From Lama guanicoe (taxonomy: Eukaryota), in contig MU054413.1 of assembly GCA_013239625.1 (NCBI GenBank), forward strand, positions 11,703,109 through 11,767,108: DNA of 64,000 bases, read 5' to 3'. The stretch's first letter is position 1, and each line of letters starts with the position of its first letter. The position numbers were made by a program, and so were the translations under genes. Below, piece after piece: positions 12,375-26,916 of this stretch. The notes under the pieces were generated by a model. It had not been told where the DNA came from, ran no database searches, and was given only the letters and a program-made list of their open reading frames with translations.

Positions 12375-12635
<261 letters not shown>

Positions 12636-12755
12636 TTACTAGGTCTTAAAAAAATGCTTAGAAAGTAGGAGTAAAACTTTGCAATTGAAATCCTGGTTGC
12701 CAGTGGTTACTGGTGGCAGGGGTCCCTGGGCTTCTGTCCAGCAGGACTTAGATTC

Positions 12756-13496
12756 TAGCAAATTCTTTTTTTTTAAATTATTTAATATTCCTTCTAATGT
12801 ACCATAGGAATTACTTCCCCAAAATGTTAATCACAGCTGGATTGAAAGAGTATTTGAGAAATGTGGCAATGTCATTTATGTAAGTAAATCACACTGTAAG
12901 TCTGCTGGAGAGCCAAAGGGATTTGCCTTCGTGGAATTTGAAACAAAAGAACAAGCACCAAAAGCTACTGAGGCAGGACAAGAACTTTTAGTCAGAACGG
13001 AGTGGGGAGGAGGGAAGGAACAGAAGTAGCTCTGAAGATGCAGAATGCCTGACTCCCAAATCACAAGTTTTAAAAATTTCTCAGAAAGACATCATTAGAA
13101 AAGAAGCTTCAGAAGTTTGCAAATAAATAAGTAAATACTTAAAAAAAGAAAGAAAAAAAGAAAAGAAAAAGAAAACCCCCAAACAAACAAACAAAACAAA
13201 GGTATTTATAAATTTAAGGTTAGGATTAGGTAAATAAGGTTTTCTTTTTTCTGAACTTATGTCTTTATTTCTTAACTTGATATTTAATTTACAGTTAGAG
13301 GTCTCTACTGAAGAAGAAAATGATACTGGAGATAGAAAAGATGGATCCCTCTTGAAAGCAAAAAGGAAGCATAAGAAAAAACATAAAGAGAGGCATAAAG
13401 TGGGAGAAGAGGTTCTACCACTGCGAGTACAATCAGAGTAAGTGAATGGTACAAATTATATTGTTGGCAATTGACACACTTCATAGCAAACTCTTT
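12756..13496 (-). mobile_element. L1-mediated retrocopy of an RNA antisense to LARP7 (likely miR-302/367 host transcript), including TSDs
   Basis: TSD tagcaaattcttt (12756-12768) / tagcaaactcttt (13484-13496); T9 at 12766-12774 is poly(A) on the - strand; ATTAAA on - strand at 12781-12786; TTT|AAAG L1-EN-type site. Confidence 0.75.
12808..13437 (+). pseudogene. LARP7-homologous fragments: an RRM1 exon (12808-12972), the 3' part of a later exon (about 12991-13130) and the [12 protein letters not shown] exon (13295-13437), with LARP7-sense intron ends retained
   Basis: [55 protein letters not shown]; [13 protein letters not shown]...KDII; [44 protein letters not shown] match LARP7; flanked by catag|, |gtaaat, ttacag|, |gtaagt; stops and frameshifts in the middle block. 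Confidence 0.9.
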
Positions 13497-14229
13497 AAAG
13501 GACCTTTTTAGGGGGTGATTTGGCCATAAAGCAGTCTCATGACATGAACCCTAAAGGTGATCTTTTAAAAAAAGTGAGGCTCTAGCGTTCTGAGCTCTGC
13601 GCTCAGTGTCATGGTGTGGCTGGTTGAATTCAGGGTCTTGCTTGATGGCAGCACCCCCCACCCCCGTCATGGGGCATCTCACAAACCCTGCAGACTGCCT
13701 TTTGTCACCAGGTCCTAAGCCTGGACCCAGAGTCACGCTTGGGGAGGGTGCAGCCACAACGGGGGGCCTGGCCCCAGCTGACAGATGGCCTGGCAGGAAC
13801 CTCTGGGTGGAGAGCTCTGGGATCCTGTTCCCATCTCACCACCATTTATGTGTTGTAAGTCCCTGGGGCCGAAGGACAGACATAGGCCCAGGGCAGCCTG
13901 GAATGTTGTGCCCCCAATTTGGCCCTCAGTTTTCAAAGGAAAATGCAGAGCTTTGAGGGGTTAATCACTAAAGACCTTTCTGCTGGGTAGCTGAAGCTGG
14001 TAGCCAAGTTCACGCTGAGAAGCAGAAGAATTAGGCCCAGGCTGCTGTGCTCCACTTTCGGGTCAGGGGCCAGGTGAGATCACACAAAAGGCAAGGTGAG
14101 TCCACGCTCTTCCCTGAAGACATTGGAATACTGTCTTTCCCTCTGTGGAAGCACTCCAGTGAAATGAAGAAGGAATGCTAGGATTAGAATATCTCCCCTT
14201 TGCAATCCCTAACGAGTGGACAAAGCTAG

Positions 14230-14855
14230 GGAAGGGGCATCAGAGAGAACAGGGCACTATGTGCCTCCTGATGGAAGAAAGCTCCATCACTGACCAAGCA
14301 GTCATGCGAAAAAGTTTTGAACCTGAATCTAGTTCAGCCTCTGGATCCAACTGCCAACTTATAAGAAACTTAGACAACACCAGGAGGATGGAATTCACAG
14401 AATCCAGACTGTGGGAAACCCCACAGGACAAATGGCCCAGCTTCCTCAACAAATAGATTGCTAAGAAAAAAAAGAGAAAGATGAAGGGGGAACCTATGAC
14501 TTCTAGGAACTTAGCCAATTGTAATGTGTGGACTTATTGGAGCCTGAATCAAACACATTTTTTTTAAAAAACTGACATTTATAATGCAACTGGAATTTCA
14601 ACAATGGATATTTGATGATATTAAGTTAATTATTTTTAGTTGTGATAATGGTATTGTGGTTATTTTGTTAAAAAATAGCCCGTGTCATTCTGAAATATTC
14701 ACAGATAAAATACTATGTCTAGGGGCATGTGGGTTCGGGCAGAGCTGAACCGAACTTGGTCATCAGTTGATGATCGCAACGGGGTGTGTGGGTTCATTGC
14801 ATTCTTTTGCTATTTTTGTGTATGCTTAAACTTCTCTGTAGTAACATATAATGTT
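14230..14855 (+). mobile_element. Old L1M (L1MC/MD/ME-like) 3' fragment
   Basis: atggatatttgatgatattaag...tgtgataatggtattgtggttat. Confidence 0.55.
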
Positions 14856-26802: not shown

Positions 26803-26916
26803 GGTGAGTGTAGCTCAGTGGTAGAGCATATGCTTAGCATGCACGAGGTCCTGGGTTCAATCCCCAATACCTCCATTTAAAAAATTTATAAATAAACTTA
26901 ATTACATCCCCCCACC
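26803..26916 (+). mobile_element. Vic-1-like tRNA-derived SINE with 12-bp TSD
   Basis: A box tagctcagtgg, B box ggttcaatcc, AT-rich tail; TSD aaagtgactcta (26791-26802 / 26917-26928). Confidence 0.9.

Follow-up and report, generated by a model that had tools for sequence, protein, structure and literature searches.

A LARP7-like insert in an intron of MACROH2A2

A macro domain exon of MACROH2A2 lies at 12470-12559 on the minus strand of the window (the whole 64-kb stretch of DNA analysed here). About 210 nt upstream of the acceptor of this exon, a 715-base insert occupies 12769-13483, in the same orientation as MACROH2A2. The original prediction placed the insertion in a MACROH2A2 intron, and this location is borne out by the full-length match of the neighbouring exon to macro-H2A.2. 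By analogy with the gene structure of MACROH2A1, this exon would be exon 7, and the designation "intron 6" is compatible with that numbering. The features of the locus, with the evidence for each in brackets, are as follows.

12470-12559, minus strand: MACROH2A2 macro domain exon (macro-H2A.2 2XD7, residues 55-83, and 6FY5; full-length, E 2e-12)
12756-12768, no strand: left copy of the TSD, TAGCAAATTCTTT (TSD comparison and window search)
12769-12774, minus strand: remnant poly(A) tail, A6, running on into the AAA of the TSD (sequence)
12786-12781, minus strand: ATTAAA poly(A) signal (sequence)
12775-12985, minus strand: terminal exon E3 of MIR302CHG (published parental rows, pattern matches and the LARP7 RRM1 match)
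12775-12807, minus strand: part of E3, tail of LARP7 intron 5, with the ATTAAA (parental rows)
12808-12972, minus strand: part of E3, antisense of LARP7 exon 6 (RRM1, residues 130-184; PDB 4WKR and parental rows)
12973-12985, minus strand: part of E3, 13 nt of LARP7 intron 6 (parental rows)
12985/12986, minus strand: predicted exon-exon junction of the source RNA, ...GACTAAAA/GTTCTTGTCC... (parental and retrocopy rows)
12986-13483, minus strand: putative exon preceding E3 in the source RNA, E2-like or extended (LARP7 blocks and splice sites)
12986-13130, minus strand: antisense to the 3′ part of LARP7 exon 7 (residues about 283-330)
13131-13294, minus strand: antisense to LARP7 intron 7 (flanking splice sites)
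13295-13437, minus strand: antisense to LARP7 exon 8 (residues 331-378)
13438-13483, minus strand: antisense to 46 nt at the start of LARP7 intron 8 (splice site 13437/gtaagt)
13484-13496, no strand: right copy of the TSD, TAGCAAACTCTTT, followed by AAAG (TSD comparison and window search)

The exons of LARP7 and MACROH2A2 were searched one at a time. With 14 mammalian LARP7 proteins as tblastn queries against the 64-kb window, LARP7 homology on the plus strand is found as three blocks within 12769-13483. Block 1 (12808-12972) encodes 55 residues without a stop, which align to LARP7 residues 130-184 (RRM1) and match PDB 4WKR with an E of 1.7e-25 (7SLP is similar, E about 1e-25). In the tblastn search, block 2 (about 12998-13123) corresponds to LARP7 residues about 291-329 and block 3 (13286-13438) to residues about 331-381. 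The identities of the blocks to LARP7 are 80%, 61-72% and 82-87%, respectively, and stops and a frame shift are present. LARP7 residues below 130 or above about 381 find no match in the 64 kb with the same 14 proteins. LARP7-sense splice sites are kept (catag/12808, 13130/gtaaat...ttacag/13295 and 13437/gtaagt), and a fourth lies at the start of 12973-12985, with its GT mutated to GC. The three plus-strand blocks with LARP7-sense splice sites had been described in the original prediction and are found as stated. LARP7 exons are numbered here from the published placement of the miR-302/367 cluster in LARP7 intron 8 (PMC8159989).

Within block 2, about 10 extra purine-rich bases (gtggggaggag, 13003-13013, plus strand) are present relative to the LARP7 codons ..TGKRKR..; they have arisen by insertion or by local expansion, and they put the LARP7 frame out of register. 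No Rfam families were found within the insert. A metagenome scan with alpaca LARP7 yielded no more than two loci, L001 and L002, both non-mammalian and distant (33-37%); they were set aside.

Several other features of the window were recorded. The insert places an ATTAAA in the MACROH2A2 intron in the orientation of the host gene, near the 3′ splice site (12775-12786, minus strand). The macro-H2A.2 peptide of 12471-12557 (minus strand) weakly resembles the TAL-effector repeat GGKQALETVQRL; the rank of TAL effectors above the true PDB match is an artefact of summing many weak repeat matches. At 26804-26875 on the plus strand, the MACROH2A2 region contains a tRNA-Ala(AGC) gene or tRNA-derived element (Rfam 37.7 bits, gathering score 29), and ARAGORN agrees. 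The part of the window from 26 to 30 kb is GC-rich with strong negative GC skew, and the 64-kb window contains 921 N (gaps or masked).

Retroposition marks and the terminal exon

The insert is bordered by a 13-bp TSD whose two copies are identical at 12 of 13 positions. Allowing at most one mismatch on either strand, these are the only two sites in the 64-kb window, in agreement with the 13-bp TSD with one mismatch proposed at the outset. The T9 run reported for the left end is present on the plus strand at 12766-12774, although three of its T nucleotides belong to the TSD and only T6 lies outside it. On the minus strand, the ATTAAA said to adjoin this T-run was located at 12786-12781. The endonuclease-type site originally given as TTT/AAAG reads CTTT/AAAG at the right TSD (13493-13500), on the tail-priming strand, and is compatible with the L1 endonuclease preference for TTTT/AA. 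Taken together, the TSD, tail, signal and nick site indicate a template that ended antisense to LARP7, and the earlier claim that the template RNA was polyadenylated on the strand opposite LARP7 is thereby upheld. The retained LARP7 splice sites and the unspliced intron 7 are as expected for an antisense RNA template.

Two observations at this end count against a retrocopy. The A-run begins 6 nt after the ATTAAA as read, the usual distance from signal to tail being 10-30 nt, and the tail is very short (A6 outside the TSD). Part of TAATTTAAA may be parental sequence, which would soften the short signal-to-tail distance. In mouse MIR302CHG, the tail lies 8-12 nt past the poly(A) signal (PMC8159989). 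None of six parental MIR302CHG rows, which include no camelid row, has an A-run directly after the ATTAAA (PMC7692494 supplementary MSA 1). As a further reservation, the camelid parental locus may itself encode an A-run or have a different junction.

We compared the insert with the parental "E1+E3(PG)" rows of cattle, whale, dolphin, hedgehog and mole, and with the row preceding cattle (PMC7692494 supplementary MSA 1). In these six rows, E3 begins ...TTTTAG/GTTCTGGACCTAC CTCAATAGCTTTTGCTGCTTG... and passes through the antisense of the LARP7 RRM1 exon as far as ...GGGAAGTAATTC CTATGATAAATTAGAAGCAAT ATTAAA TAAAATG...; the ATTAAA at the end of E3 is found in whale, dolphin, hedgehog and the row preceding cattle, and cattle and mole differ there (PMC7692494). 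The minus strand of the window, read from 12985, is GTTCTTGTCCTGC CTCAGTAGCTTTTGGTGCTTG ... GGGGAAGTAATTC CTATGGTACATTAGAAGGAAT ATTAAA TAATTT, followed by the A-run. The 17-mer at the start of whale E3 has a single match in the window, at 12969-12985 on the minus strand (14/17), and the match is in perfect register with the end of the exon; the chance expectation for such a match anywhere in the window is 0.25. The 30-mer at the 3′ end of whale E3, which includes the ATTAAA, likewise has a single match, at 12778-12807 on the minus strand (27/30; 0/100 shuffles). The whole of E3 shows about 20 mismatches to the whale row in 207 nt, as counted by eye and not from a computed full alignment. To the left of 12769 there is no LARP7 homology in the window, even though, in the parental rows, the antisense of LARP7 exon 5 follows at a distance of only about 100-130 nt (PMC7692494).

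The match of both the E3 acceptor and the ATTAAA to the parental rows indicates that the 3′ part of the insert is the terminal exon of MIR302CHG, bounded by its own acceptor and ending just past its own poly(A) signal. The original prediction expected the left end to match an antisense poly(A) site just upstream of the LARP7 RRM exon, and the whale 30-mer with the ATTAAA falls at that place. It had also inferred that the template was the spliced, polyadenylated host RNA of miR-302/367, with which the matched acceptor and signal agree.

A host gene wholly within LARP7 intron 8 is ruled out by the published E3 rows, which cover LARP7 exon 6 in antisense. LARP7 is nowhere named in PMC7692494, although its RRM1 exon has E3 as its reverse complement. 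Because E3 is antisense to this coding exon, its mammal-wide conservation is explained at least partly by coding constraint on the opposite strand.

Internal junction, upstream exon and 5′ end

The E3 side of the internal junction coincides, to the nucleotide, with the acceptor of the annotated human gene, and the published MIR302CHG retrocopies T1S2 and T1S3 use an E3 acceptor identical to that of the insert (PMC7692494 rows). The 13 nt of 12973-12985 (gcaggacaagaac) correspond to the 5′ end of LARP7 intron 6 (gtaggtccagaac in the parental rows), and the junction is accordingly placed at 12985/12986. An earlier assignment of 12973-12985 to LARP7 exon 7 is thus corrected. A junction at 12972/12973 with microhomology was rejected for the same reason. 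The 8 nt upstream of the E3 side are unlike the parental polypyrimidine tract and AG, and with the junction at 12985/12986 the same 8 nt, read antisense, fit codons of LARP7 exon 7 for (P)S-V-(R/K)-T. On the donor side, two of eight positions differ from the predicted exon end, which counts against the proposed origin. An antisense donor GT would lie in LARP7 exon 7 at Leu-Pro codons (..TTA CCT..), giving AAG/GTAAG, a good donor. With its junction on a documented acceptor, the source RNA had lost an intron of the antisense gene before it was copied.

The junction and the boundaries also bear on whether genomic LARP7 DNA was copied directly, by segmental duplication or as filler at a repaired break, and later suffered an internal deletion. 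Such a copy would account for the kept LARP7 introns and splice sites and for the short tail, but we consider it very improbable. One end of the supposed deletion would fall exactly on the annotated MIR302CHG E3 acceptor, and a junction end on a documented acceptor is very hard to get by random deletion. Moreover, the left end lies just past the MIR302CHG ATTAAA, the insert is flanked by a 13-bp TSD with an L1-type nick site, and LARP7 exon 5 is absent despite its proximity in the parental rows.

Protein-level similarity to LARP7 would steer annotation pipelines toward the label of an ordinary LARP7 pseudogene, that is, a retrocopy of a partly spliced sense LARP7 pre-mRNA. There is hardly any probability left for this origin. 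The A-run is absent at the LARP7-sense 3′ end (13483), and the tail, signal and nick site are on the opposite strand. LARP7 introns 5, 6, 7 and 8 are partly or wholly retained, and the removed segment runs from 13 nt inside LARP7 intron 6 to inside exon 7, not between LARP7 splice sites. The strand on which the tail lies and the location of the junction refute a sense LARP7 pre-mRNA copy. The original statement that the insert is not a processed copy of LARP7 mRNA likewise stands: LARP7 intron 7 is still present, as are parts of introns 5, 6 and 8, and the tail belongs to the antisense strand.

Upstream of the junction, the putative upstream exon (12986-13483) is 498 nt long. At its 5′ end the insert has the antisense of LARP7 intron 8 and exon 8 in place of E1, so no E1 sequence links the source RNA to the MIR302CHG promoter, which counts against the proposed source. 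A whale E1 30-mer has no match in the window at up to three mismatches, a weak test given about 10% decay. The upstream exon is putatively equivalent to human exon E2, and the source RNA would have used the MIR302CHG promoter.

If instead 13483 is the true 5′ end, the source RNA would have E3 and the poly(A) site in common with MIR302CHG transcripts without deriving from a full-length, promoter-initiated one; it would be the Drosha 3′ fragment past pre-miR-367, or an RNA initiated just downstream of miR-367. The absence of E1 and the start of the insert 46 nt into LARP7 intron 8, which holds the miRNA cluster, are in line with such an RNA. So is the short distance of miR-367 from LARP7 exon 8, presumably less than about 150 nt, which we estimate from the assumed position of miR-367 and the span of the human gene. 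Human MIR302CHG spans 112,646,720-112,648,703 (PMC8159989). Nevertheless, 5′ truncation is the commonest L1 outcome and needs no special RNA, and uncapped Drosha 3′ fragments are normally degraded; we therefore regard an RNA beginning at 13483 as rather unlikely, and a full transcript truncated by L1 at its 5′ end as most likely. Were the Drosha origin true, 13483 would record the Drosha cut at miR-367, and pri-miRNA remnants would survive long enough for retrotransposition.

Origin, age and relation to published retrocopies

The insert carries retroposition hallmarks, contains E3 with its acceptor boundary and its poly(A) signal, and is antisense in orientation to LARP7. It is very probably a fossil L1-mediated retrocopy of a spliced, polyadenylated MIR302CHG RNA antisense to LARP7. 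The source RNA would have had an upstream exon that, in LARP7-sense terms, reached from the beginning of intron 8 through exon 8 and intron 7 into the 3′ part of exon 7. That upstream exon would have been spliced to the terminal exon E3, antisense to LARP7 exon 6, and the RNA cleaved and polyadenylated just past the proximal ATTAAA. L1 endonuclease would then have nicked CTTT/AAAG in the MACROH2A2 intron, and target-primed reverse transcription from the RNA tail would have produced the 13-bp TSD, with the end at 13483 reflecting either 5′ truncation or the start of the RNA. The copy has since decayed by about 10%, with stops and frameshifts in the LARP7 frame. It shows no sign of being functional.

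The region 12600-14600 is represented by 0.91-0.96 of sampled words in 15 DNA runs from four organisms and seven studies, and by only 0.11-0.12 in a fifth organism. The values in the four organisms indicate that the copy is fixed among a few closely related organisms. Of the LARP7 proteins compared, those of camelids come closest to block 2 (72%). The copy has the artiodactyl "EVCK" state, yet also the "VRT" and "DAEC" states known outside artiodactyls. This mixture of states, together with about 10% decay, suggests an old insertion, as far as the sequence comparison can date it. Decay of this extent would point to an age of tens of millions of years, and the copy may therefore occur beyond camels.

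A stretch that pipelines would call a LARP7 pseudogene would thus be a copy of the antisense miR-302/367 host lncRNA, and an old transcript record of host-gene processing in early artiodactyls. The event is consistent with very high expression of MIR302CHG RNA where L1 insertions become heritable. There is also some chance, though not a large one, that the copy records an RNA undocumented outside human annotation, either an E2-containing, proximal-poly(A) isoform of MIR302CHG or a spliced, polyadenylated Drosha product. For the E2-containing isoform, the setting may have been the germline or embryo of an early artiodactyl or camelid.

Retrocopies of MIR302CHG have been described before: 12 independent L1-made copies in placental mammals, of types T1 (E1+E302+E3) and T2 (E1+E3) (Sci Rep 2020;10:20612, PMC7692494). 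The novelty assumed in the original prediction is accordingly reduced. The published survey covered 45 species, with no camelids among them, and MACROH2A2/H2AFY2 is not among its tabulated insertion sites (PMC7692494). The present insert would be the 13th independent MIR302CHG retroposition event, in a previously unsampled lineage. It shares with the known retrocopies the parental gene, the E3 acceptor, the TSD and poly(A) mechanism, and the state of a non-functional pseudogene. Whereas those copies carry E1 (with or without E302), the insert has neither E1 nor E302 and carries instead about 498 nt from between miR-367 and E3, nothing like which occurs in the 12 published copies. The human exon E2, between the miRNA cluster and E3, is stated to be absent from all 12 (PMC7692494). 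The T1S2 and T1S3 rows run about 60-70 nt past the ATTAAA to a distal signal, whereas the insert stops after the proximal ATTAAA. Its upstream exon (miR-367 to E3) together with the proximal poly(A) site would be a form missing from the published retrocopies. In one paper supplement, 11-12-mers from block 3 (13340-13380) have no match.

Human MIR302CHG NR_146093 is given as E1-E2-E3 with two poly(A) signals in the citations of Barroso-delJesus 2008 by PMC8159989 and PMC7692494. As far as these citations describe it, its middle exon lies between the miRNA cluster and E3, is spliced to E3 and belongs to a polyadenylated RNA, as in the source RNA proposed for the insert. Ordinary processed pseudogenes resemble the insert in being L1-made, flanked by a TSD and decayed in frame, but their templates are mRNAs of protein-coding genes, whereas the template of the insert was an antisense non-coding RNA. 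Unlike in an ordinary processed pseudogene, LARP7 introns separate the LARP7-like blocks of the insert, and its tail is antisense to them. Within the published class of MIR302CHG retrocopies, the insert is one more member, with a structure of its own.
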